From the IMG/VR virus record IMGVR_UViG_3300019776_000324, positions 62,001 to 126,000 of that record: 64,000 bases of DNA; one strand, 5' to 3'. This document shows positions 11,431 through 52,992 of the stretch, one piece after another. Numbering within the stretch: position 1 is the stretch's first letter; each line of letters opens with the position of its first letter. Position numbers and translations under genes: made by a program. The notes beneath the pieces were generated by a model. It was given only the letters and a program-made list of their open reading frames with translations, did no database searches and was not told the origin of the DNA.

Positions 11431-12342
11431 TTGGCCACAACATTTGCACCTAAAGTGGTAGTACCTAAAAACTACCTCAATAACAGAGATATCTTAAAAC
11501 AAATACATCTAAGCAAGAACACATATTGTACCTATTTAGATCCAGTTAACGATCACCAATACGATATTATTTTGCCTACTGTGGAGAAAATTAACCAGCG
11601 CACTATTGCTGAAGCTAGACGCAACAAAGCCGATAGACTCAAACGCGAAGGTGTTATTGTAGATCCTAAAAAGATTGCCAATACCGATTTAGTGTTTCGT
11701 ATTACTTGCTGGGAACACATACCAATGGCGCCTAAAAAAGTGCCAAAAACCACAGCTAAAAAGAAAAAAATTGAAGATATATTTGAGCTAGAACTTGAAG
11801 CAGAAGATCCACTAGCAGAGTTATTGGATATTCCTGTGTTGGATGAAAAGCATGTACGCTTGAACTTTCCTCCGTTTTATCACTATCGTTTAGACGAGAA
11901 TAAAGTGCCATTTTTAGTAGGCAAGAGTCACTGGAAAGGCGACTTAGAGCACGGTGAATTCAGCAAGGATCACGGTCAAACTACACGCACCTTAGCTACC
12001 ATGTACATGAAGCTGTGTGAACGCTATGCTACTCGCAGTAACTGGAGAGGATACACTTACAATGAAGAAATGCGTGGACAAGCTCTACTACAACTTAGCC
12101 AAATTGGTCTCCAGTTTGATGAATCAAAGTCTCAAAACCCATTTGCTTATTACACTGCCGCTATCACTAATAGTTTTACTCGTATTCTTAACTTAGAGAA
12201 AAAGAATCAAAACATTCGTGACGATATGCTAGAGCAAGCTGGATTGAATCCTTCATGGACTAGACAAAATGCCGGCAAGAAAGATCCTAATTTTGGATCT
12301 GTTGTTACTATCACAGCAGGCGAAGACTACGAAGCTCAATGA
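11431..12342 (+). CDS. gp55: Late-transcription sigma factor
   Basis: NYLNNRDIL N-terminus; NWRGYTYNEEM..ALLQL..FDESKSQNPFAYYTAAITNSF gp55 signature; TTG start 8 nt after AGGAG. Confidence 0.9.
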   Translation: MATTFAPKVVVPKNYLNNRDILKQIHLSKNTYCTYLDPVNDHQYDIILPTVEKINQRTIAEARRNKADRLKREGVIVDPKKIANTDLVFRITCWEHIPMAPKKVPKTTAKKKKIEDIFELELEAEDPLAELLDIPVLDEKHVRLNFPPFYHYRLDENKVPFLVGKSHWKGDLEHGEFSKDHGQTTRTLATMYMKLCERYATRSNWRGYTYNEEMRGQALLQLSQIGLQFDESKSQNPFAYYTAAITNSFTRILNLEKKNQNIRDDMLEQAGLNPSWTRQNAGKKDPNFGSVVTITAGEDYEAQ

Positions 12343-13484
12343 GTAAAACAGAAGTGTATTGCACTGCTCCTTGGAACGGATTAACCATCCGCGAAGATGG
12401 GCATGTGCGAACTTGCTGTGTAGGTTCAACCTCGTTGGGTAACTTAAACGAACAAACAATTGAATCTATTGAGTCTGGCCCAGTGCTAGCGGAACTACGG
12501 CAAGCAATGTTAAACTCTGAGCCGCATAGTACAAACTGCCAGGCCTGTATATCACACGAAGCTCATTCAGGGCTTGCATCGCTTCGGCAACACTATCTTC
12601 GTTATTATCCAAATACCGAACAATTAAAATTGCAATTTGTAGACATCAGATGGAATAATATTTGTAACCTGGGCTGTATGTATTGCGATTCAACTTTTAG
12701 TAGCACTTGGGCAACTCGAATGCCTGTTGCACAAAAAAATGTTCCAGTAAAGGTATATCAGGATGAATTGCTAGATTGGATACTTGATCGTTCTGCTGAT
12801 GTCAAGGAAATTATGTTAGTGGGTGGCGAACCCATGTTAATGAAACAAAATTATACTTTGTTGGCCAAATTGCCCTTGGATTCAAAAATTAGTATTATAA
12901 CCAACCTAAGCTACGATTTAGAAAATTTGCCTTGTTTGGATGATCTACTTAAACGGCCCAGAAACAATATCATTTGGAATATCAGTTTAGAAAACACTGA
13001 ACAACAATTTGAGTATGTTAGATCTGGTGCACAATGGTCGCAACTTGAAAAGAATTTAAAATATGTGTCTGACAGATGGCCGGTTACTATCAATGCTGTA
13101 TATTCGGTGTTTAGTGCGTTTACTCTAGTTGATACAGTTAAAGTTGCGCATCGTCTTGGTGTACAAAAGATGAATCTTGTACCTATTAATAAAAACACAT
13201 CTATGGACATGTACAACATGCCATTGGAAATAAAGAAAATAGCACTTGAACAACTGACCGAAGCGCAGGACTGGCATCAGAATCAGTTACACCCCGAGGA
13301 TCGATTTTTATATCCGCTTGTTGGGTTTGATGATTTGAAGAACATGTTGCAGGTTAGTCCAAAAAATCCTGTCACTTGGGCCAAATTCTATGACGGCGTT
13401 GAAAATTACGATAAATGGAGCCAAATTAAATTTCAAAATTTATGGCCAGAAGTATTTGAATTAATGAAAAAGTATTTGAAGTAA
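12339..13484 (+). CDS. Radical SAM enzyme with N-terminal SPASM/twitch-like domain
   Basis: CNLGCMYC (CxxxCxxC), GGEP motif; N-terminal CTAPW..TCC..CQAC. Confidence 0.88.
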   Translation: MSKTEVYCTAPWNGLTIREDGHVRTCCVGSTSLGNLNEQTIESIESGPVLAELRQAMLNSEPHSTNCQACISHEAHSGLASLRQHYLRYYPNTEQLKLQFVDIRWNNICNLGCMYCDSTFSSTWATRMPVAQKNVPVKVYQDELLDWILDRSADVKEIMLVGGEPMLMKQNYTLLAKLPLDSKISIITNLSYDLENLPCLDDLLKRPRNNIIWNISLENTEQQFEYVRSGAQWSQLEKNLKYVSDRWPVTINAVYSVFSAFTLVDTVKVAHRLGVQKMNLVPINKNTSMDMYNMPLEIKKIALEQLTEAQDWHQNQLHPEDRFLYPLVGFDDLKNMLQVSPKNPVTWAKFYDGVENYDKWSQIKFQNLWPEVFELMKKYLK

Positions 13485-13527: not shown

Positions 13528-14544
13528 ATGACAAATCTATTCCGCAAAACGGCCGTATGTACTGATATCCATTTTGGATTGAAATCAAACAGCCTAGTAC
13601 ACAATCAAGACTGTTCGGACTTTATCGACTGGTTTATTGCCACAGCCAAAGAACAAGGCTGTGAAACTGGCATGTTCCTAGGTGATTGGCATCACCATCG
13701 TGCCAGCATTAACTTGCAAACTCTGCACTTCAGTTTAAAAAGTTTACAGAAACTAAGTGCTGCATTTGATAATTTCTATTTTATTCCAGGAAATCATGAC
13801 TTGTACTACAGAGACAAGCGTGACATCCACGGTGCAGAATGGGCACAACACTTGCCTAATATACATGTCATCAATGATTGGTTCAGTGAAGGCGGAGTAA
13901 CTATTGCCCCATGGCTGGTAGGTGACGATCATAAAAAGATACAAAAACTAAACAGTCAGTATGTGTTTGGACACTTTGAACTGCCACACTTTAAAATGAA
14001 CGCCATGGTAGAGATGCCAGATCACGGTGAGATACATGTGGATCACTTTAGTGGTGTAGGCGAAGTATATTCTGGACACTTCCATTTACGACAAAACAAA
14101 CGCAACATCAACTATATTGGCAACTGCTTTCCGCATAACTTTGCTGACGCAGGTGACAGTAGTCGCGGCATGATGGTCCTAGAGTGGGGCAAGCCAGCAG
14201 AATATCACGCATGGCCAGGACAACCCTTGTATCGTGTGCTTAAACTGAGTCAGGTGATTGACAATGCTCCAAACATGTTGGCCAAGAATATGCATGTCAG
14301 AGTAGAACTAGACATTGATATCAGTTACGAAGAAGCTAACTTTATCAAAGAAACATTTGTTAAAGACTACAACTTAAGAGAAATGGCCTTGCTACCAGTT
14401 AAGAGCACCGCAGTCGATTTGGATCTCGCTCCGGGCGAAATCAAGTTTGAAAGCGTAGATCAAATTGTTACAGACCAAATTACTAATATCGAAAGTGAGT
14501 TTTACGATCCTAAGCTACTGTTAAAAATATATCAAAATCTATAA
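13528..14544 (+). CDS. gp47: Recombination endonuclease subunit (Mre11/SbcD-like)
   Basis: DIHFG, GDWHH, GNHD, GHFE, SGHFH metallophosphoesterase motifs. Confidence 0.95.
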   Translation: MTNLFRKTAVCTDIHFGLKSNSLVHNQDCSDFIDWFIATAKEQGCETGMFLGDWHHHRASINLQTLHFSLKSLQKLSAAFDNFYFIPGNHDLYYRDKRDIHGAEWAQHLPNIHVINDWFSEGGVTIAPWLVGDDHKKIQKLNSQYVFGHFELPHFKMNAMVEMPDHGEIHVDHFSGVGEVYSGHFHLRQNKRNINYIGNCFPHNFADAGDSSRGMMVLEWGKPAEYHAWPGQPLYRVLKLSQVIDNAPNMLAKNMHVRVELDIDISYEEANFIKETFVKDYNLREMALLPVKSTAVDLDLAPGEIKFESVDQIVTDQITNIESEFYDPKLLLKIYQNL

Positions 14545-16118
14545 TGATAGAAGATATCCTGTCAGACTTACAACAAAGATATGATTGCTCTAGTCCTATC
14601 TATTTGTCTGATTTTTTTCAGCCAGGCGGTGATCAACGACTTTACAATAAGTTAAAGGGATTGTATCAGCCGGCGTACGATAATCGATATCGAATAATAG
14701 TCGTACAAGATTGTGCTGACATACATGATTACAAGGATTTGCCTGGAAGAGCTATTGTTGCTCTTCAAAAATATGCCAGCCAAATTGATATTTCTAATTT
14801 TTTTATTTTGTTACTAACCAGTAACAATATGGAATCTGAATTGGAAACAGCCAGAACTCTGTATTCATCTGATGAGTGTGCTATACGCACAGAATTGATT
14901 GATAATTTACCCTTGGTGGAGTTGCCTACAGATGCACAAGATACATTCTGTGTGCTTCCGTGGATGCACTTGTATATTGGGCCCGATGGTAATATTTTAC
15001 CATGCTGTGTTGCTGATCAAAAATTTCCAATTGGCAACATAAAGGATCAGTCTATCACCGATATAGTGACTTCTGATAAATTTAATCGCATTAGATCTAA
15101 TATGATCCAGGGCTTGCGCAGTAAAGAATGCTCGTATTGTTATGACCAAGAAGATTCTAAAATAACAAGCCTGCGCTCACAGCATAATAAAAAATATCCT
15201 TCTATTTCTGCCAAGTCAGTCAAGCATGACGGAACCATTGATCAATTTGAGCCAATTGATCTTGACATACGATTGAACAACATTTGTAATCTTAAATGTC
15301 GCATGTGTAGTGGATATTTTAGTAGTGCTATTGCACAAGAAGAAGCAGAATTGTTCGGCAATACTGATTCTGTTAATGCTTCTTTACGATTACAACAAAG
15401 AAAATCCAAATTTTCTGAAATAGTAGAGTATCTGCCGTCTACTGAAAAAATTTACTTTGCCGGGGGCGAGCCCTTGCTAGCCAGTGAACACTACGAAATT
15501 CTAAAATATCTAATTGACTGCGGTAATACTGATTTGGAAATTGCTTACAATACCAATTTTACTACATTACAATATCGCGATATTAGTGTGCTAGATTTAT
15601 GGAAACACTTTTCCAATGTTACTGTTGGTGCTAGCCTTGATGCCTGTGGCCCGGTTGCTGAGTATGTACGACACGGTACTAATTGGGCAACTATAGAATC
15701 AAATTTAAAATTATTAAAAACTCAATGCCCAACTGTAAATTTTAGAGTAGCATCAACTATAGGATTATTAAATGTCCAAAGTCTGATTGAGTTACAACAA
15801 ACCTGGCACACTAATCAACTGCTTGATATTTCAAAATTTTCAATGACTACCATGATCGAACCTGCGCACTTGACAGTTCGAGTTTTACCCACGCATCATA
15901 AACAACGGCTGGAGGCACTAATTACTGCTCATATCAAATGGTGCCAGAGTAATTCTGCCATTAGTCTTGCAAATCAATGGCAAGACCTGTTAAACTACAT
16001 GTGGTCCGAAGATCACAGTCACTATTTAGATGACTTTAAACGATTGACCATATCACTAGATGCTCATAGAAAAGAGTCTCTGTTGATTGCAGTACCCGAA
16101 CTTAGCGACTTATTATGA
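14544..16118 (+). CDS. Radical SAM enzyme with twitch/SPASM domain and an extra ~130-aa N-terminal domain
   Basis: FCVLPW..PCC..CSYC, then CNLKCRMC, AGGEP, YNTN. Confidence 0.88.
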   Translation: MIEDILSDLQQRYDCSSPIYLSDFFQPGGDQRLYNKLKGLYQPAYDNRYRIIVVQDCADIHDYKDLPGRAIVALQKYASQIDISNFFILLLTSNNMESELETARTLYSSDECAIRTELIDNLPLVELPTDAQDTFCVLPWMHLYIGPDGNILPCCVADQKFPIGNIKDQSITDIVTSDKFNRIRSNMIQGLRSKECSYCYDQEDSKITSLRSQHNKKYPSISAKSVKHDGTIDQFEPIDLDIRLNNICNLKCRMCSGYFSSAIAQEEAELFGNTDSVNASLRLQQRKSKFSEIVEYLPSTEKIYFAGGEPLLASEHYEILKYLIDCGNTDLEIAYNTNFTTLQYRDISVLDLWKHFSNVTVGASLDACGPVAEYVRHGTNWATIESNLKLLKTQCPTVNFRVASTIGLLNVQSLIELQQTWHTNQLLDISKFSMTTMIEPAHLTVRVLPTHHKQRLEALITAHIKWCQSNSAISLANQWQDLLNYMWSEDHSHYLDDFKRLTISLDAHRKESLLIAVPELSDLL

Positions 16119-17878
16119 TACAAATTAAAAATTTAACTGTTCGTAACTTTATGAGTGTAGGTAACGCTACACAAGCTGTGGACTTTGATCGTAACGATCT
16201 TACACTGGTACTAGGCGAGAACTTGGACTTAGGCGGTGACGGAAGTCGTAACGGAACAGGTAAAACTACAATTATCAATGCTCTTAGTTACGCCTTGTAC
16301 GGACAAGCATTAAGTAATATTCGCAAAGACAATCTAGTTAACAAGACCAACGGCAAAGGCATGTTGGTAAGTTTGGATTTTGTTGTTGGCAATCAAGAAT
16401 ATAAGATTGAGCGTGGTCGCAAGCCCAATGTACTTAGGTTCTATGTCAACAACAAAGAACAAGAAATTACAGATGATGCACAAGGCGATTCAAGAGAAAC
16501 ACAAGAAGCTATTGAACATACCCTAGGGCTTAGTCATGACATGTTCAAGCATATCCTAGCACTCAATACTTACACAGAACCGTTTTTAAGTTTAAAAGCC
16601 AACGATCAGCGTACAATTATTGAGCAGTTGTTAGGTATTACCATGCTGTCAGAACGGGCAGACAAGATCAAAGAGCTTAATAAATCTACTAAAGATGGAA
16701 TAACACAAGAAGAGTTTCGTATTCGTGCTGTGCAAGAAGCTAACAAGCGCATTGAAGAACAAATTACGGCACTCAAGCGTAGACAAACAATGTGGACCGA
16801 CAAGCATGAGCAAGATATCAAGGAACTTGAGAAGGCCTTATCGTCGTTACAGAATATACAGATTGAAGACGAGATTAGAGCGCACAAAGATCATAAGGAA
16901 TGGGATCAAAAGCGCAAGGACATCAATGAACTTTCGTCGCAGATCAGCAGAACGAAACTGGACATCAGCCGGGAGGAAAAGCTGGTTGCCAAACTATCTA
17001 AAGAACTCGAGACGCTTTCAAAACACGAATGTCATACATGCGGTCAGTCCTTTCACGACAGTAAGCACCAACAAGTTTTGGAAGCGAAACAGAAGGATCT
17101 GGCAGTGGCAAGAGAAAACTGCCAAGCTCATAGCACCCTGTTATCAGAACTACAGGTTGCCCACGACTCCCTGGGCCCGTTAGGAAAACCTCCTACCATG
17201 TTCTACGACAAAGAAGAAGATGCAATACATCATCAGGCTACTTTAACCAACTTAGAAAAACAAATTGCTGAAAAATCCACAGAGGTAGACCCTTATGGAG
17301 AGCAAATTGAAGAAATGCAACAGCAAGCCCTACAGGAGGTAACATATGACACACTTAATGAACTTACTCGCTTACAAGAACATCAAGAGTTCTTGCTCAA
17401 ACTACTCACAAGCAAAGACTCGTTTATCCGTAAAAAAATTATTGAACAAAATCTTAGCTATCTAAATGCTAGACTAACACACTACTTAGATCGTGTGGGC
17501 TTGCCGCATACTGTGGTATTCCAAAACGATCTGACTGTCAGCATCGAAGAGCTAGGTCGTGAGCTGGACTTTGATAACTTATCTAGAGGTGAACGCAATC
17601 GTTTGATCTTGAGTATGAGCTGGGCATTCCGTGATGTGTTTGAAAGCCTGTATCAGCCTATTAACTTGTTGTTTATAGATGAAATGATTGACAACGGATT
17701 GGATACACAAGGTGTTGAAAGCAGTCTAGCATTACTAAAACAAATGAGCCGTGAACGACACAAGAGTATTTGGCTAGTAAGTCACAGAGATGAACTTGCT
17801 GGTCGTGTAGAGAACATACTCAAAGTTGTTAAGGAAAACGGCTTTACAAGTTACAACACGGATGTAGAAATAGCGTGA
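16115..17878 (+). CDS. gp46: Recombination ATPase subunit (Rad50/SbcC-like)
   Basis: Walker A NGTGKTT, CHTC zinc hook in coiled coil, LSRGE signature, FIDE Walker B, VSH. Confidence 0.95.
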   Translation: MIQIKNLTVRNFMSVGNATQAVDFDRNDLTLVLGENLDLGGDGSRNGTGKTTIINALSYALYGQALSNIRKDNLVNKTNGKGMLVSLDFVVGNQEYKIERGRKPNVLRFYVNNKEQEITDDAQGDSRETQEAIEHTLGLSHDMFKHILALNTYTEPFLSLKANDQRTIIEQLLGITMLSERADKIKELNKSTKDGITQEEFRIRAVQEANKRIEEQITALKRRQTMWTDKHEQDIKELEKALSSLQNIQIEDEIRAHKDHKEWDQKRKDINELSSQISRTKLDISREEKLVAKLSKELETLSKHECHTCGQSFHDSKHQQVLEAKQKDLAVARENCQAHSTLLSELQVAHDSLGPLGKPPTMFYDKEEDAIHHQATLTNLEKQIAEKSTEVDPYGEQIEEMQQQALQEVTYDTLNELTRLQEHQEFLLKLLTSKDSFIRKKIIEQNLSYLNARLTHYLDRVGLPHTVVFQNDLTVSIEELGRELDFDNLSRGERNRLILSMSWAFRDVFESLYQPINLLFIDEMIDNGLDTQGVESSLALLKQMSRERHKSIWLVSHRDELAGRVENILKVVKENGFTSYNTDVEIA

Positions 17879-18888
17879 CATTAGCAACCTGGCACTTCCA
17901 TATTGAGATATCAAGCAAGTGTACCTTGCGTTGTCCTCGGTGCGCACGACAAGAAGTGCCAGACAGTTTGATCAATACCGAATTAGATTTAGAGTTTTTC
18001 AAACGCAACTTTACTGAAAAATTTATTTTGGATAATGTTGAGAAGATCACATTCTGCGGCGATGACGGTGATCCTATCTATGCACACGATCTTATTCCTG
18101 TAATTGATTATATCAAACGCATTAAGCCTGTACAAATTGTTATTATTACCAACGGTTCACACAAAAAGCCAGAATGGTGGCGTGGACTTGGTAGTGTATT
18201 AACTTCTCAAGATACTGTACATTTTAGTATAGATGGCTGGGATAACGAATCCAACAATCTGTATAGGGTCAACAGTGATTTTAACAGCATACTCGAAGGT
18301 GTAGCCAATCTGCGTTCAACTAGTAGTTGCAGAACAGTTTGGGCTGCTATTGCATTCAAGTTTAACGAAGATCATATCACCAACATAGTATCTATGGCGC
18401 AAAGCTACGGGTTTGATGCTGTACAGTTTACAAAGAGTACTAAGTTTGGTAGTGTATATCCAAGTTATGGCAACGATGATCCGCTTGAACCTAGTAGAAA
18501 GTTTGTTAGCAGCTCGCATAGATTTGAAAGAGATGTTATACTGTTAAGCTCGCGTGGGTTACATCCATCTGTAGATGTAAAGAATATTGAACTGTATAAA
18601 TCAGTTAAAGAAGTAAATGGCGTTAAACCGCTATGTGAGATTGGAAACAAAGGACTGTATATTGATGCTCGCGGTAGATTGTTTCCGTGTTGCTGGGTAG
18701 CTAATCGTTACGCACACAATACAGAATGGCAACAGCTTGCTAATCAATTTGACCTCAATCAAAGAACATTAACAGATGTATTAGTAGATCCGTTTTGGAC
18801 AACAGAATTTAAAACATTTAAGTGGCAAGAGTGTCAAAACAAGTGTAATGCCAAGAAAGTGGACGAAAAATATGCAACTCAGTGGTGA
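17875..18888 (+). CDS. Radical SAM enzyme with C-terminal SPASM-like Cys cluster
   Basis: CTLRCPRC, GDDGDP, ITNG; C-terminal C..FPCCW..CQNKC. Confidence 0.88.
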   Translation: MTLATWHFHIEISSKCTLRCPRCARQEVPDSLINTELDLEFFKRNFTEKFILDNVEKITFCGDDGDPIYAHDLIPVIDYIKRIKPVQIVIITNGSHKKPEWWRGLGSVLTSQDTVHFSIDGWDNESNNLYRVNSDFNSILEGVANLRSTSSCRTVWAAIAFKFNEDHITNIVSMAQSYGFDAVQFTKSTKFGSVYPSYGNDDPLEPSRKFVSSSHRFERDVILLSSRGLHPSVDVKNIELYKSVKEVNGVKPLCEIGNKGLYIDARGRLFPCCWVANRYAHNTEWQQLANQFDLNQRTLTDVLVDPFWTTEFKTFKWQECQNKCNAKKVDEKYATQW

Positions 18889-18906: not shown

Positions 18907-19335
18907 ATGGTATGGCTGTATGAAAACACTCAAATTGAAACTTTACCCGAAGATTGTGTCGGCTTTGTTTATTTGATCACAAATAACATCTCTGGCAGAA
19001 AGTATATTGGAAAGAAATTAGCAAAATTTAGTAAGACAACATACAAAGTAGTAAAATTAAAGAACGGCAACAAGAAGCGCAAGAAAATTAAAAGTAAAAT
19101 AGATTCAGACTGGCAGCTATACTATGGAAGCAACGATCAACTCAACAAAGACATTGCAGAGCTAGGCTCAGACAACTTCACAAGAGAAATATTATTTTAT
19201 TGTAAATCAAAAGCAGAATGCAGTTATGTAGAAGCTAGAGAACAATTTAATCATAGAGTATTAGAATCAGATGACTATTACAATGGGCAGATAGTTTGCC
19301 GCATACACGGTAGTCACATAAAAAACAAAATTTAG
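18907..19335 (+). CDS. Compact GIY-YIG (Seg-like) endonuclease
   Basis: GFVYLITN..GRKYIGKK, YYGS, FTREIL, EAREQ, YYNG; strongly basic insert KLKNGNKKRKKIKSK; 142 aa. Confidence 0.85.
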   Translation: MVWLYENTQIETLPEDCVGFVYLITNNISGRKYIGKKLAKFSKTTYKVVKLKNGNKKRKKIKSKIDSDWQLYYGSNDQLNKDIAELGSDNFTREILFYCKSKAECSYVEAREQFNHRVLESDDYYNGQIVCRIHGSHIKNKI

Positions 19336-19777
19336 ATAGGCAGCTTTACTGACTCTGTGGTAAGTGTATATGGCTTACCCCCATCGAAGAACGGTGTGAT
19401 ACCCGGTCTGGAAAACTTTGGGCGTCAAAGGCAATTGCTAACTTAAGGCAACAAATGGTTTGAGCTCTGTAGAAAAAGATACAACTCATGCTTATAGGAC
19501 TTGGATTTATTATCGGGTCACTAGGGTTCCGTTGATTTGTGAAGCTAGAGTAAGGGGTACCGGTCAACCGCCTCTGCGTAGGAAACTACAATCTCTTTAT
19601 AATAAATGACTGCTGTCACTCGGATAATGTGAAAAGAAGTCAATTCACCGTGGCACGGTGAATTGTGACCACATAATCTGGATAATGCTAAAGAAAAGCA
19701 ATTATGTTCTAATTAAAACATTATGTCTGAGCTTTAGCGAAAGACATAGATTAGCGTAGCTAATCTTTCAATGACAC
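19336..19777 (+). ncRNA. Putative large structured RNA (or structured ssDNA/origin element) directly after the GIY-YIG gene
   Basis: Longest non-coding gap in the window; more than 10 helices found by eye, including a GAAA-tetraloop hairpin (19578-19589), a perfect long-range 9-bp pair (19505-19513/19599-19607) and a 12-bp inverted repeat (19641-19665). Strand inferred from the GNRA loop and G-U pairs. Confidence 0.6.
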
Positions 19778-20113
19778 TCAGAATGTATCAGGCCAATCAC
19801 GAAACAGTGCATGTTGTATGTCTCCAGCAACAAACTGATTAAATGATTTATGTTTCACTTCGAGTTCTCCTTCTAATGGAGCAACACGACGGAAAGCACT
19901 ATCCATCTGTGCCATGTCTTTGAATTCCATAAGTATCATCCATTCAGGCATGTCAGCGATACTACGAAAACCCATCTTGCAACGAGTAATTCTGTATGAT
20001 TCCATTTTGCCTTCGCTGATCAAATGATCAAAGAAACTGCGCATGCCATTGGTCCATTCCAGATCAGAAATGTCGCCTTCTTTGTTTGCCCAGATTGTGT
20101 ATAAGTCTGCCAT
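19778..20113 (-). CDS. DUF6614-like protein
   Basis: MADLYTIWAN..SDLEW..FFDHL..GKMESYRITRCKMGF..PEWMILMEF..MAQMDSAF..V..H pattern recalled for DUF6614. Confidence 0.6.
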   Translation of the reverse strand: MADLYTIWANKEGDISDLEWTNGMRSFFDHLISEGKMESYRITRCKMGFRSIADMPEWMILMEFKDMAQMDSAFRRVAPLEGELEVKHKSFNQFVAGDIQHALFRDWPDTF

Positions 20114-20114
20114 G

Positions 20115-20546
20115 TTATATAGGTCCTAAGAGTTCAAAGCCCGTGATGCCTTGTTTGTATAAGTGTGCTTGATCTAAGTACAAATACTTAAATCCTCTTT
20201 CACGGTAGATAGCACATTCGGTTTTTAAACTTTCTATGCCCAGTCTCAGCTTGGGCTTTTTATAGTTCCAAGCAAACTGAGCACACAAAGCATTCTCATT
20301 GTCGTATCGTTTAATAAGACTAAACGCTACAAGTAAATCATTGTCGTAATAGCCAATTACATCAGTGTCAGGGTCTGTGTACTGACTGTCAAAGATTGGC
20401 ATAACACTGGCAAAGTGTTTGTAGATACAGTAGGTTCTGTAGATATCATTGAGTACAGCAATATCTGGATCTTTGATGTACGCCCAAGCTACACTGACTT
20501 GATCAGTATTCTTGGCAAGATCTATTCTGGCAAATTGATAAGTCAT
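20115..20546 (-). CDS. Aminoacyl-tRNA:protein transferase C-terminal-like (ATE_C/Bpt) GNAT-fold protein
   Basis: YYDNDLLVAFS..FAWNY..PKLRLG..SL..E....RERGFKYLYL....YK....FELL parallels the Bpt/ATE1 C-terminus (LVAV..YDPD..SLG..IE.AR..G..Y.YLG..YK..F...E.L). Confidence 0.65.
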   Translation of the reverse strand: MTYQFARIDLAKNTDQVSVAWAYIKDPDIAVLNDIYRTYCIYKHFASVMPIFDSQYTDPDTDVIGYYDNDLLVAFSLIKRYDNENALCAQFAWNYKKPKLRLGIESLKTECAIYRERGFKYLYLDQAHLYKQGITGFELLGPI

Positions 20547-21049
20547 TTGCGTGGATCCTGTCTGTGCTGAAATAGTGCCTCAAGATACTCTTCTGGCCAT
20601 GTATCGTAAAAGCCTTTGTCTGCCATGATCTTGGCCTTGGCATTCAAGTCACTAAGACTTTGTACCAGAGCCAATGCATAAGTGCCTTGATTCATTGAAA
20701 CACCGTTGACAATCTCAGGATCGCCGGGATGATCTTCTAAGGCTAATATATCATTGCGTAGTAACCACGATCCATTGGCTAACTTTAGTTTGTAGCTGAA
20801 TTCGTTATAATCAAACTCTTTAGGGTCGTAGGCTAAAACAACAACGCTTTTGCCACCCAGTCCGTGAACAGCAATATCTACCAAGTCGTAATATGGATCT
20901 CGGCCAATGCGAACTTCAAAATCTTTTTCTAGTCTAGCCTTGCGAGCATACGGACAAGGAGGCCAGCCACCTAGGGCAGGATTCTTGACTTCTACAAAGT
21001 CTACAATCCATTTTTCTATATCAGTTTGTACAGTTGCTAGGTCTAACAT
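20543..21049 (-). CDS. DUF1415-like protein
   Basis: W..DFV...N.....PCPYARKA and DHP motifs as recalled for DUF1415. Confidence 0.55.
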   Translation of the reverse strand: MLDLATVQTDIEKWIVDFVEVKNPALGGWPPCPYARKARLEKDFEVRIGRDPYYDLVDIAVHGLGGKSVVVLAYDPKEFDYNEFSYKLKLANGSWLLRNDILALEDHPGDPEIVNGVSMNQGTYALALVQSLSDLNAKAKIMADKGFYDTWPEEYLEALFQHRQDPRK

Positions 21050-21225
21050 TAGAAGAAGGGTAATCCGGTTTTCTTGGTTGTTTCTAAATTTTCTTTGATT
21101 AGTTCACTGATACCAGTGCGTTCGCTGACACTGAGTTGTAGTGCTTGGTCGTAGCTAACACCACCTCTCATGTACCACGCAATTTTAATAGCCTCTTGCC
21201 TTATACTAACAGTTTCCTCGTCCAT
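21049..21225 (-). CDS. gp51: Baseplate hub assembly / tail chaperone (gp51-like); probably also made as the -1 frameshift extension of gp26
   Basis: WYMRGGVSYDQALQLSVSER..I.ELI motif; the frame stays open upstream through the slippery site at 21285-21279. Confidence 0.75.
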   Translation of the reverse strand: MDEETVSIRQEAIKIAWYMRGGVSYDQALQLSVSERTGISELIKENLETTKKTGLPFF

Positions 21226-21263
21226 CTTGTCAACTATGTTAGCAATCTGGTCAGAGTCCAAGA

Positions 21264-22097
21264 CTAAGAGGCGGGTCCGAAAAAACTGGACATGTCCAAG
21301 GTAATGATCTGCTCGTATTCGTGCTGGCAAGCAGGACACTGAATCTTAAGCGGTTGCATTTCACTTTGTTCACGCAGTTTGATAACATGATCTCTAATTT
21401 GGTCAAACAGTTTGCGGTCGCAATTTTTTAAGAAGTCGTTAATATATTCAAATTCACTAACCAACGCCTGCGGAGTTTTGATAGCACTAATGCTTAATGC
21501 TAAGGATTGTACAGTAATATCGGTTAATTTTTTAAATGCCGCAGTTAACGCAGTCATTTTGTCAGCTTCGGAAACTGTAGCATCAGGAATAACTTGTAAC
21601 AGTTTTTGTTGCTCAAACTGTAGCTGATTGTTATCGTTCAAGTGTTTGTAGTTCAGTGGACGGAAATAAATTTCTAAATCACCATGACGAACACTGGCGC
21701 TATAATCAGCACCTCTTAGGGTGTCTAGCACTGATCTAAGATCTAACTTGCGCTCACTGGTATCGCTACATTTTGGACAATTACTCATAAACTCCATGTC
21801 ATGCCCGTAACTAGCAATTCTAATAGCTATTAAAATAGTATCTAAATCGATACTAGGAACTACCCAAGCATCTCTGATTGCAGGAACACAGCTTTGGATT
21901 ACATTAACTGTGGCTTGCCCATTAAACAGTGCGTCTGGAGTTCTATAAGTAATCTCATCAATTGCAGTCATTGGGTAAACTGGAAGTTCGCCGTTTGCAG
22001 GCATAGCTAATGTACCGTTAGGGTAATTTTGGCCCTGACTGGGTAATTTGATGTAGATGCTGGGTTGTCTAAAGTACTGACTTAAAGGATTGGTCAT
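21264..22097 (-). CDS. gp26: Baseplate hub assembly chaperone (gp26-like)
   Basis: NPL..YFRQP.IYIKLPS.G, PMTAIDEI, IAIRIASYG, CPKC and CPAC Zn motifs, C-terminal SSFF. Confidence 0.85.
   Translation of the reverse strand: MTNPLSQYFRQPSIYIKLPSQGQNYPNGTLAMPANGELPVYPMTAIDEITYRTPDALFNGQATVNVIQSCVPAIRDAWVVPSIDLDTILIAIRIASYGHDMEFMSNCPKCSDTSERKLDLRSVLDTLRGADYSASVRHGDLEIYFRPLNYKHLNDNNQLQFEQQKLLQVIPDATVSEADKMTALTAAFKKLTDITVQSLALSISAIKTPQALVSEFEYINDFLKNCDRKLFDQIRDHVIKLREQSEMQPLKIQCPACQHEYEQIITLDMSSFFGPAS
21279..21285 (-). other. -1 ribosomal frameshift slippery heptamer U UUU UUC
   Basis: Minus strand AGT TTT TTC GGA CCC GCC TCT TAG, in phase with gp26; the -1 frame reads FFRTRLLVLDSDQ... into the gp51-like ORF. 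Confidence 0.7.
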
Positions 22098-52099: not shown

Positions 52100-52110
52100 C
52101 TAAGTAGTTG

Positions 52111-52992
52111 ATGTACCAAATTCCTACCAAAGTAGATTTTTATATAACCAATGTTTGTAATCTAACCTGCCAAAATTGTAATAGATTTAATAATTTTAAT
52201 TTTAAAGGCTGGCAGGATTGGAAAGAATATGAGCCCATTTATGAACAATGGGGACAACTAGTTGGGCTCCGTGCTATTACAATCATGGGCGGAGAGCCGT
52301 TTCTTAACCCTACTCTCAAAGAATGGATCTCTGGGTTAAATCGTATATTTGGCATAGAAGTACAAGTGCTAACCAACGGCACTAGATTCCTACAAACTCC
52401 TGGAGTGTACGATAGTATGCTTTGGAAAAACCCTACCAATCAAATGCAAAATCACATAGGAGTTAGTTTACATACTCCAGAGGATTTTGAACAAATTAGA
52501 TCAGACATACACGAGTTCCTTCAAGGTACTGTAACAGAATACAGCAAGGATGAAAATCCCTGGGGAGCTGATTGGCAATTTCAAGATAGCAATGGTGTAA
52601 TGATCAATGTTTATACTGTGGATGAATTTTTTGATTCAGCAGTAACATCCAACAACGGTGTATATACCCTACACAATAACGATCCAGAACAAGCTCACAA
52701 TAATTGCGCTTTTGTAAAATGGAAAAGTTATCATTTTATTCGTGGAAAATTTTACAAGTGCGGCCCTAGTGCGTTACTACCGGAGTTTGACACCCAATAT
52801 CAACTAGATATTTCAGACGAAGATCGAAAGATACTGCACTCGTACCAGCCATTATCTGTGGACAATTTTAGCGAATACCACGAAGAATTTTTTGCTAATC
52901 TGGATAATCCTATTGCACAATGTAAGTTTTGTTCAGTAAACACAAGCAAAGCAAAAATCTATCCTATCAGGAAAGGTTCTAAATCTAACTAA
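52111..52992 (+). CDS. Radical SAM enzyme (fourth in the window)
   Basis: CNLTCQNC, GGEPFLNP, LTNG, C-terminal C..YKC..CKFC; ATG 4 nt after TAAGTA. Confidence 0.85.
   Translation: MYQIPTKVDFYITNVCNLTCQNCNRFNNFNFKGWQDWKEYEPIYEQWGQLVGLRAITIMGGEPFLNPTLKEWISGLNRIFGIEVQVLTNGTRFLQTPGVYDSMLWKNPTNQMQNHIGVSLHTPEDFEQIRSDIHEFLQGTVTEYSKDENPWGADWQFQDSNGVMINVYTVDEFFDSAVTSNNGVYTLHNNDPEQAHNNCAFVKWKSYHFIRGKFYKCGPSALLPEFDTQYQLDISDEDRKILHSYQPLSVDNFSEYHEEFFANLDNPIAQCKFCSVNTSKAKIYPIRKGSKSN

Follow-up and report, generated by a model that had tools for sequence, protein, structure and literature searches.

Genomic organization of the locus

The window, i.e., the whole analysed stretch of 64,000 nucleotides (64 kb) from IMG/VR record IMGVR_UViG_3300019776_000324, belongs to an uncultivated 344-kb phage. 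Three tightly coupled genes, A, B and C, were found on its minus strand at the end of a baseplate operon (Table 1). The stop of a 96-aa ORF and the start of A share one base, the stop of A and the start of B overlap, and one base separates the stop of B from the start of C. Upstream on the same strand, the 277-aa protein was predicted as a baseplate hub (Pfam T4_baseplate, E 1.5e-16; phrog_150), and its homologs are annotated as baseplate hub in Rak2-, GAP32- and Atu_ph07-type jumbo phages. Homologs of the 96-aa ORF follow the hub gene in Atu_ph07, Phosso and Xoo-sp13. In the nearest cultured relative, Sinorhizobium phage Phosso, the operon ends after the small protein, i.e., the trio is an addition to the hub operon. 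The order hub-96aa-A-B-C was kept in all 80 close IMG/VR relatives wherever the contig reaches far enough.

Table 1. Coordinates of the genes, motifs and signals at the locus (positions in the window).
Feature	Position	Strand	Length	Description
Baseplate-hub gene	21264..22097	-	277 aa	First gene of the operon to which the trio is appended
Small conserved ORF	21049..21339	-	96 aa as listed	Partner of the hub gene; the true start is probably later
Junction of 96-aa ORF and A	21051-21047	-		TAATG
Gene A	20543..21049	-	168 aa	Distant homolog of thiolate-haem "sandwich-fold" oxygenases (cytochrome P422/DUF6875, DUF1415 fold, AglA-like)
PPCPYA motif of A	20945..20962	-		Residues 30-35; Cys32 at 20954-20956
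DHP motif of A	20726..20734	-		Residues 106-108
Junction of A and B	20546-20543	-		ATGA
Gene B	20115..20546	-	143 aa	Minimal single GNAT domain, assigned at profile level to the ATE_C (Bpt/ATE1) lineage
Ser106...Glu110 of B	20217..20231	-		Aligned with klAte1 Ser273 and Glu277
Tyr130-Lys131 of B	20154..20159	-		Aligned with Bpt Y215-K216
Gene C	19778..20113	-	111 aa	DUF6614; predicted alpha+beta barrel
Terminator-like hairpins	19641..19766	-		19766-19748 and 19665-19641; likely the end of the operon (consensus scan only)

The T4 late promoter TATAAATA occurred once in the window and not near this operon, and the sigma-70 scan was at background level. Metatranscriptomes gave only 80-90% identical fragments from relatives, which is no proof of transcription or timing. 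The late expression suggested by an earlier note on the sequence was therefore not verified. No Rfam families or tRNAs were found in or near the trio. The convergent rSAM genes beside the module here and in one other locus (L082) are not orthologous (BLASTP E 0.02), and because the phage has 13 rSAM matches, this adjacency is expected by chance. PADLOC defence models gave no hit.

Gene A

Gene A was assigned as a distant homolog of the thiolate-haem sandwich-fold oxygenases. The earlier note had called it DUF1415-like, but no Pfam DUF1415 hit was obtained at E<=1 for A or its 21 relatives, and the resemblance is only at fold and language-model level. In hhalign against 12 cyanobacterial DUF6875 proteins, 89.7% probability was obtained (E 1.8e-6), and the homology covers the N-terminal two thirds with a shared W..F...P.P.LG...CP[FY] segment. 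The Pfam DUF6875 model (PF21780) gave no hit for A itself. Ten of 22 family members matched it weakly (best E 7e-4), and the Oscillatoria homolog scored 21.1 bits against a cut-off of 24.5.

The AF2 model of A (pLDDT 95) has the fold of this group, i.e., a four-stranded sheet sandwiched by helices, with the Cys after the first helix. Foldseek against AFDB returned DUF6875/DUF1415 clusters at TM 0.5-0.76. The only PDB match that stands out is AglA (9ub3), Z 7.3 over 150 residues, against 4.0 for the next match. Both characterised branches of this fold are Cys-ligated haem oxygenases acting on amino acids, and P422 Cys58 and AglA Cys44 are axial haem ligands.

In the alignment of the family, Cys32-Pro33 is invariant or nearly so, and Cys32 aligns on the haem-ligating Cys of the P422 motif RxGxVCP. 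However, A keeps only the Cys-Pro of this motif. The Arg, which binds the haem propionates, and the Gly and Val are replaced (GGWPPCP). The Trp-binding motifs SBR1 Rx(M/L)x3Dx2F, SBR2 Dx2(Q/H)x3K and SBR3 MxGxF are present in the 12 cyanobacterial P422 proteins but absent in A, where SBR3 is replaced by ALEDHP. The DHP of A is invariant and aligns with the invariant (E)FH of P422. A different substrate is therefore expected, and haem binding by A is an inference. No Fer2 ferredoxin is encoded by the phage.

Gene B

Gene B was predicted as a single GNAT domain of the aminoacyl-tRNA-transferase branch without ATE_N, as the earlier note had proposed. On its own, B matches Pfam ATE_C only weakly (E 0.011, 16.8 bits against a cut-off of 25), but transitive phmmer links lead to relatives that pass the cut-off (27-49 bits). 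In profile search against PDB, the best hit was ATE1 (E 0.0077), and hhalign against Bpt gave 79.9% probability (E 1.4e-5). The sequence-level signals all point to ATE_C, Acetyltransf_6 or FemAB-type families. The AF2 model (pLDDT 94) superposes, in VIA, on the second GNAT lobe of MprF, FemX, Sba18, VipF and NMT with Z 13-15. Foldseek also matched it to Fem/MprF/Sba18-type enzymes. However, fold search alone cannot separate aa-tRNA donors from acyl-CoA donors, since VipF and NMT score as high as MprF and FemX.

The residue equivalences rest on remote alignments, not on a structural superposition. Tyr130 (95/95 members) and Lys131 (86/95) align with Bpt Y215-K216, which corresponds to klAte1 Tyr303-Lys304 and FemX Phe304-Lys305, i.e., the catalytic lysine and the aromatic residue before it (PMC9351520). 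W93 aligns with Trp260. Ser106 (74/95) and Glu110 (81/95) align with Ser273 and Glu277 of the ATE1 arginine side-chain pocket, where Bpt has Ala and Gln. This was read with SEQRES numbering = native + 4, checked against Leu291/Tyr293. The other two pocket positions differ (C/A88, L122).

B begins at the strand equivalent to Bpt VRIPV and has no ATE_N, the acceptor pocket, and no CxxC. It also lacks the basic alpha3 helix, which binds tRNA, is essential for klAte1 activity and is conserved in known aa-tRNA transferases. The equivalent segment of Bpt (PxRSQRRxWxRN) is deleted in short B, although it is present in the 230-260 aa phage relatives. The B family is acidic (pI about 5-6; B itself about 5.6), whereas Bpt is about 8-9.5. 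The tRNA dependence of B is therefore an inference.

Gene C

Gene C is a member of DUF6614 (PF20319; E 4.5e-21, 75.5 bits against a cut-off of 25, covering 106 of 116 positions), and this was confirmed in the genome search. From Atlas structural neighbors, a Dabb/ABM/HapK-like barrel was predicted. A literature hit linking DUF6614 to anti-Druantia (Druad1) is a 44-aa protein with only a top HHpred label and was rejected as irrelevant.

Gene linkage in other phages

Of 52 diverse short-B loci with enough flank in IMG/VR, 44 have A within 1.5 kb. A is upstream and adjacent in 28, downstream in 11 and convergent in 5. The pair also occurs as a convergent overlapping pair. Five loci have another partner, phrog_3577 (gene X), for which no Pfam or PDB match was found. 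C was found next to B in 22 of 52 loci, 16 of them directly downstream. The conserved unit is thus the A-B pair, and not the trio described in the earlier note. In other phage lineages, the A-B module follows nrdA-nrdB or thyX. Among 360 collected proteins, none carries two of the A, B, C or X domains, apart from one 61-aa fragment.

By blastn of the locus and tblastn of B and C, no hits were found in 50,697 cultured-phage records. Only A-like and X-like proteins occur in cultured cyano-, roseo- and Puniceispirillum phages, and there without B. A-like genes without B were also found in bacteria. A literature search on phage ATE_C returned nothing relevant. In metagenomes, both families are abundant, i.e., 2,775 B clusters and 2,976 A clusters at 90% identity, almost all unnamed, and they occur almost only in viral contigs.

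Predicted function of the cassette

The trio is best explained as a mobile accessory enzyme cassette with A and B as its core and C as an optional helper, a reading to which a probability of roughly 0.45 was given. In this reading, B is a stripped-down catalytic domain of the aminoacyl-tRNA transferase type, which probably transfers a basic amino acid, most likely arginine, from charged tRNA onto an amine of an acceptor. A would be a small thiolate-haem oxygenase of the P422/AglA fold, which probably hydroxylates either the acceptor or the aminoacylated product. The target is more likely a small amino-acid-derived molecule or short peptide than a virion protein. An arginine theme agrees with this. 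In several relatives, an amidinotransferase-family gene (best PDB hits HsvA, AGAT, SxtG and StrB1, E down to 7e-14) is inserted inside the cassette. The phage carries 28 tRNA genes, including two tRNA-Arg. Such a chemistry has not yet been described for phages.

The earlier note proposed that A and B perhaps form a split ATE/Bpt-type protein transferase, in which A supplies the missing metal-binding half, acting on virion or host proteins, e.g., on termini created by gp21 cleavage of core proteins. This is unlikely, but some observations are in its favor. Because B lacks ATE_N, something else must provide acceptor recognition, and A or phrog_3577 accompanies B in 49 of 52 loci. The genes are translationally coupled, and ATE1 itself is haem-sensitive. 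The trio is downstream of baseplate-hub genes here, and A-like or X-like genes sit next to gp25 in cyanophages. However, no sequence or fold similarity of A to ATE_N or to any ATE1 chain was found, and A is homologous to stand-alone oxygenases. A-like genes also occur without B. The link to gp21-cleaved core proteins or to the virion had no support, since the module sits with nucleotide-metabolism genes in other lineages. A physical complex could not be shown: prediction of A with haem, C and B scored 0.00, which is no answer and is not evidence either way.

It is less likely still that B is an ordinary acyl-CoA-dependent N-acyltransferase and A a non-haem protein, without any involvement of tRNA. 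The high VIA score of the acetyl-CoA enzyme VipF (Z 15.2), the match to N-myristoyltransferase, the acidity of B, the missing basic helix and the low direct ATE_C score agree with this view. However, the CoA pyrophosphate-binding motif Q/R-x-x-G-x-G/A between beta4 and alpha3 is absent. G103 is invariant, but position G+2 is Gly or Ala in only 13 of 95 members (Ala in 13/95, never Gly among the common residues), and G-3 is mostly Leu, with no conserved basic residue. The Tyr-Lys of the tRNA-dependent enzymes is also invariant or nearly so.

That the three genes are unrelated passengers of a hypervariable island is very improbable and is largely refuted for A-B, because, although homing-endonuclease and amidinotransferase genes are inserted at different junctions in relatives and C is dispensable, A-B adjacency survives down to about 30-40% identity in different genomic contexts and with changed orientation.

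A more speculative and improbable possibility, which is not excluded, is that the two enzymes make an N-hydroxy-arginyl (hydroxyguanidine-type) conjugate during infection. The product could be an antimetabolite or a radical- or NO-releasing compound used for host takeover, and the repeated position right after nrdA-nrdB would fit a hydroxyurea-like effect on ribonucleotide reductase. Alternatively, the pair could form an oxidation-coupled arginylation branch analogous to the eukaryotic Cys-oxidation/ATE1 N-degron pathway. Either would be the first tRNA-dependent non-ribosomal aminoacylation system and the first non-P450 thiolate-haem oxygenase assigned a role in a phage.

If the main reading is right, phages would deploy aminoacyl-tRNA outside translation, and the newly recognised non-P450 thiolate-haem oxygenases would extend into viruses. 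The smallest functional core of an ATE-type transferase would also be defined, which is useful for understanding how ATE1 and Bpt work. The module is widespread in freshwater and marine phages.

Comparison with known systems

The closest precedent is the argolaphos pathway of Streptomyces monomycini. There, the Arg-tRNA-dependent amide-forming ligase AglC makes an arginyl conjugate, and AglA, a small Cys-ligated haem hydroxylase of the sandwich fold, N-hydroxylates it. The argolaphos cluster also holds GNAT-type aa-tRNA ligases and an ATP-grasp ligase. However, no sequence-level match between A and YqcI/YcgG, the family of AglA, was detected. The phage genes are much smaller, lie in a phage structural operon, and have no phosphonate genes nearby.

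Of the cytochrome P422 tryptophan hydroxylases, A shares the alpha/beta sandwich fold, but it is shorter, i.e., 168 aa against 180-300. With the Bpt/ATE1 aminoacyl-tRNA-protein transferases (ATE_N + ATE_C), the GNAT core of B shares the LG, YLG and YK...E motifs. However, B has no Cys4 cluster, is 143 aa against about 240 (Bpt) or about 500 (ATE1), and is paired with a separate gene. The Fem/MprF/Sba18-type aa-tRNA-dependent transferases have two GNAT lobes in one chain, whereas B is a single lobe, which resembles their second, catalytic one.

Organization of the three-gene locus

The genes A, B, and C were found on the minus strand in a 344,244-bp IMG/VR virus record with direct terminal repeats. 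The stop codon of the upstream 96-aa ORF shares a base with the start of A (TAATG), A and B overlap by ATGA, and one base separates B from C. The earlier note, which had described three tightly coupled genes with these junctions, was therefore accurate, except that it did not state that the genes are on the minus strand. Upstream on the same strand, a 277-aa baseplate-hub protein was identified (Pfam T4_baseplate, E 1.5e-16; phrog_150), and its homologs are annotated as hub subunits in the Rak2/GAP32/Atu_ph07-type jumbo myoviruses. As listed, the 96-aa ORF (GTG start) overlaps the end of the hub gene by 76 nt. However, its homolog in Sinorhizobium phage Phosso is 76 aa and starts 4 nt before the hub stop, so the true start here is probably near 21267. 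Two terminator-like hairpins follow C, and a direct repeat, GGATAATG..AAAGAA, read by eye, occurs twice in the non-coding stretch downstream of C, flanking the stronger hairpin.

All 80 close relatives fetched from IMG/VR keep the order hub, small ORF, A, B, C wherever the contig reaches that far. A diverges faster (44-74% identity) than B (71-85%) or C (70-95%). In Phosso, the nearest cultured relative, the hub gene and the small ORF are followed at once by convergent genes. The trio is thus an addition to a two-gene operon.

The junctions of the cassette are plastic. GIY-YIG/NUMOD3 endonuclease genes are inserted between the small ORF and A in two relatives (loci L015 and L069), and a SegE-type GIY-YIG homing endonuclease lies just beyond the cassette (Pfam E 9e-33), which marks the locus as a hot spot for mobile genes. 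A 380-415-aa gene of the amidinotransferase family, with a C-terminal GGIHC, is inserted between A and B in four loci (L013, L049, L052, and L067) or between B and C in three loci (L070, L074, and L076). The phage carries 13 radical SAM matches, 11 of them above the Pfam cut-off and four inside the window, which is an unusually large complement for one phage. The one beside the trio also has a SPASM domain.

Coordinates of the features in the window, in the whole record (G000), and in other IMG/VR loci (L)
Sequence	Coordinates	Strand	Feature	Size
Window	21049..20543	-	Gene A	168 aa
Window	20546..20115	-	Gene B	143 aa
Window	20113..19778	-	Gene C	111 aa
Window	21264-21339		Overlap of the 96-aa ORF, as listed, with the end of the hub gene	76 nt
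Window	19623-19642 and 19681-19700		Direct repeat downstream of C
Window	18907-19335	+	SegE-type GIY-YIG homing endonuclease
Window	12339-13484		Radical SAM ORF
Window	14544-16118		Radical SAM ORF
Window	17875-18888		Radical SAM ORF with SPASM domain, beside the trio
Window	52108-52992		Radical SAM ORF
G000:C1	28715-29719		Paralog of the inserted amidinotransferase-family gene
G000:C1	323249-341019		tRNA island (330-341 kb) and tmRNA-like gene (323 kb)
G000:C1	521-612		tRNA-Pro
L013	4865-6001		Amidinotransferase-family gene between A and B
L015	4888-5502		GIY-YIG/NUMOD3 endonuclease gene between the small ORF and A
L084	4348-5040		Protein X (phrog_3577)
L085	3039-3674		Protein X (phrog_3577)
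L099	7028-7711		Protein X (phrog_3577)

Gene B

On its own, B matched Pfam ATE_C only weakly (E 0.011, 16.8 bits, cut-off 25) and NCBIfam arginyltransferase at E 0.045. A full HMMER scan of 1.84 billion representatives found 120 relatives, of which the 225-260-aa ones pass the ATE_C cut-off, and none has an ATE_N hit. A 24-sequence profile found yeast ATE1 as its best solved relative (E 0.0077), and it was aligned to ten gammaproteobacterial Bpt proteins with an hhalign probability of 79.9% and E 1.4e-5. The AlphaFold model (pLDDT 94) is one complete GNAT domain. Foldseek ranked MprF, ATE1, alanyl- and lysyl-PG synthases, and the aa-tRNA-dependent peptide synthases Sba18/Sbb17 at the top, mixed with tandem-GNAT acetyltransferases. 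VIA-align gave Z 13-15 to the second lobe of MprF, FemX, and Sba18, but equally to VipF and N-myristoyltransferase. Therefore, fold alone does not identify the donor.

B was compared with known transferases at the residue level, using a joint alignment of Bpt, the long phage forms, and short B together with the published klAte1 analysis (PMC9351520). Short B starts at the strand equivalent to Bpt 'VRIPV' and has lost the whole ATE_N, the Cys cluster, and the basic helix (Bpt 'PxRSQRRxWxRN') that is essential in klAte1, whereas the LG, YLG, and YK...E motifs are retained. The HMMER alignment to klAte1 was read with SEQRES numbering = native + 4, an offset verified by Leu291/Tyr293 and by all four pocket residues. 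W93 of B corresponds to Trp260, S106 to Ser273, E110 to Glu277, and Y130-K131 to Tyr303-Lys304, in which Lys304 is the FemX-Lys305-type catalytic lysine. Of 95 distinct family members, Y130 was conserved in 95, K131 in 86, W93 in 94, E110 in 81, and S106 in 74. Glu277 is the charge that binds the arginine side chain in ATE1, whereas Bpt, which transfers leucine, has Gln there. The acetyl-CoA pyrophosphate motif is absent. However, the missing basic helix and the acidic character of the family, i.e., pI about 5-6 against about 8-9.5 for Bpt, speak against tRNA use.

Gene A

A of the window showed no Pfam hit to DUF1415 or to anything credible. Its profile found nothing credible in the PDB (best E 0.42), and Foldseek found no credible PDB match to its model (best E 8e-3). 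Weak signals were nevertheless obtained. Language-model and structure neighbors in the ESM Atlas are viral clusters in which some members carry DUF6875 or DUF1415, and ten of 22 family members match PF21780 weakly. AFDB fold clusters named DUF6875 and DUF1415 match the model (pLDDT 95) at TM 0.5-0.6, and unnamed clusters match at 0.72-0.76.

DUF6875 was recently characterized as 'cytochrome P422', i.e., Cys-ligated b-haem monooxygenases of tryptophan with the haem motif RxGxVCP (bioRxiv 10.64898/2025.12.11.692455). Twelve genuine cyanobacterial members were collected, and hhalign of the A profile against them gave 89.7% probability and E 1.8e-6 over 96 columns. Cys32 of A lies on the haem Cys, and the invariant DHP of A lies on the invariant (E)FH of P422. 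A Foldseek-independent search of 48,161 solved chains gave a single match that stands out, AglA (9ub3), with Z 7.3 over 150 residues against 4.0 for the next. AglA is a Cys44-ligated haem 'sandwich-fold' enzyme that N-hydroxylates the guanidine of an arginyl conjugate (PMC12866846). A does not keep the P422 Trp-binding motifs or the propionate-binding Arg. Haem binding by A is thus likely, although it has not been shown, and the substrate must differ from that of P422.

Gene C

C is a firm DUF6614 member (E 4.5e-21). Its predicted-structure neighbors are the Dabb, ABM, HapK, and DUF1330 alpha+beta barrels.

Co-occurrence of the genes

In distant relatives of B (30-45% identity), B is preceded by an A homolog in quite different contexts, i.e., after nrdA-nrdB (L084 and L099), after thyX (L085), abutting a convergent radical SAM gene (L082), and as a convergent, overlapping pair with a long B form (L090-92). 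For a larger sample, a pattern scan for the QFAWDY..P motif gave 120 IMG/VR loci with B-like genes. Of these, 52 loci had a short-type B with at least 1.5 kb on both sides. A was found within 1.5 kb in 44 of the 52 loci, being upstream and adjacent in 28, downstream in 11, and convergent in five. C was found within 2.5 kb in 22 loci. In five loci, a different conserved partner, X (phrog_3577), was found instead of A, and three loci had neither A nor X. X is a conserved protein of about 210-230 aa with no Pfam or PDB match, which follows B, or replaces A as its neighbor, in other phage lineages (L084, L085, L099, and ten further IMG/VR loci). Its homologs in Synechococcus phages S-T4 and ACG-2014f sit just upstream of gp25, and it is absent from the whole record studied here.

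The 230-260-aa B-like forms, which keep an ATE_N-like but Cys-less N-terminus and a basic segment, mostly stand alone (2 of 17 have A). A-like genes occur without B in cultured cyano-, roseo-, and Puniceispirillum phages, in Bdellovibrionia and other MAGs, and in the Oscillatoria sp. PCC 10802 chromosome (NZ_KB235948.1, about 3.247 Mb). In the latter, a lone A homolog (60% identity) lies between panB and a two-partner-secretion gene, with a 59-aa remnant of B beside it on the opposite strand, and it looks like a decayed phage-derived copy in a cyanobacterial genome. This suggests that B depends on a partner, while A does not depend on B. The conserved unit is A+B, not the trio.

Expression

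The late expression claimed in the earlier note rests only on position, and the T4 late promoter consensus is absent at this locus. Lake and freshwater metatranscriptome assemblies contain only 80-90% identical fragments of B and C from relatives, which does not prove transcription. One lake metatranscriptome contig (80-90% identical) joins window positions 19692 and 21049, skipping exactly the trio, as if a relative lacked the cassette, but the support is weak because only 48 letters lie on the shorter side.

Alternative explanations

The earlier note had proposed that A and B perhaps form a split transferase, with A supplying the metal-binding part, acting on virion or host proteins or making a small molecule, and had mentioned gp21 cleavage of core proteins. 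This model correctly senses that B needs a partner, but A is not ATE_N-like, and the virion and gp21 link is unsupported, because the module sits with nucleotide-metabolism genes elsewhere. This model seems unlikely. That B is an ordinary acyl-CoA GNAT is not excluded by fold, but it is doubtful, being disfavored by the missing CoA motif and the conserved catalytic Tyr-Lys. Chance adjacency was largely refuted for A-B by the co-occurrence in the 52 loci.

Proposed function and comparison with known systems

Each of the proteins belongs to a known superfamily. As far as two literature searches could show, the stand-alone 143-aa ATE_C core, its pairing with a P422/AglA-like protein, and its wide spread in phages are undescribed.

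Three independent but individually weak hints point to arginine in the phage module. The first is the Ser/Glu pocket of B, and the second is AglA as the nearest solved fold of A. The third is the facultative insertion, inside the cassette, of the gene whose profile matches amidinotransferases (HsvA, E 7e-14; AGAT, SxtG, and StrB1), of which the whole record keeps a 40%-identical copy about 50 kb away. We therefore propose, tentatively, that B aminoacylates an amine acceptor from (arginyl-)tRNA and that A oxidizes the acceptor or the product, with C as an accessory barrel protein. Every step after the fold and family assignments is inference. The phage was counted as encoding 28 tRNAs, including two tRNA-Arg, and no plant-type ferredoxin, so electrons for A would have to come from host partners. 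ARAGORN called 29 tRNA genes in the whole record. Of these, 28, covering nearly all amino acids, form an island with a tmRNA-like gene nearby, and the 29th is the separate tRNA-Pro, whereas no tRNA lies in the window.

The best precedent found is argolaphos biosynthesis. In this pathway, AMPn-Arg is made from arginine, ATP, tRNA, ArgRS, and AglC, which is therefore an Arg-tRNA-dependent ligase, and AglA then hydroxylates the arginyl guanidine. The argolaphos cluster also contains GNAT-type aa-tRNA ligases and an ATP-grasp ligase.
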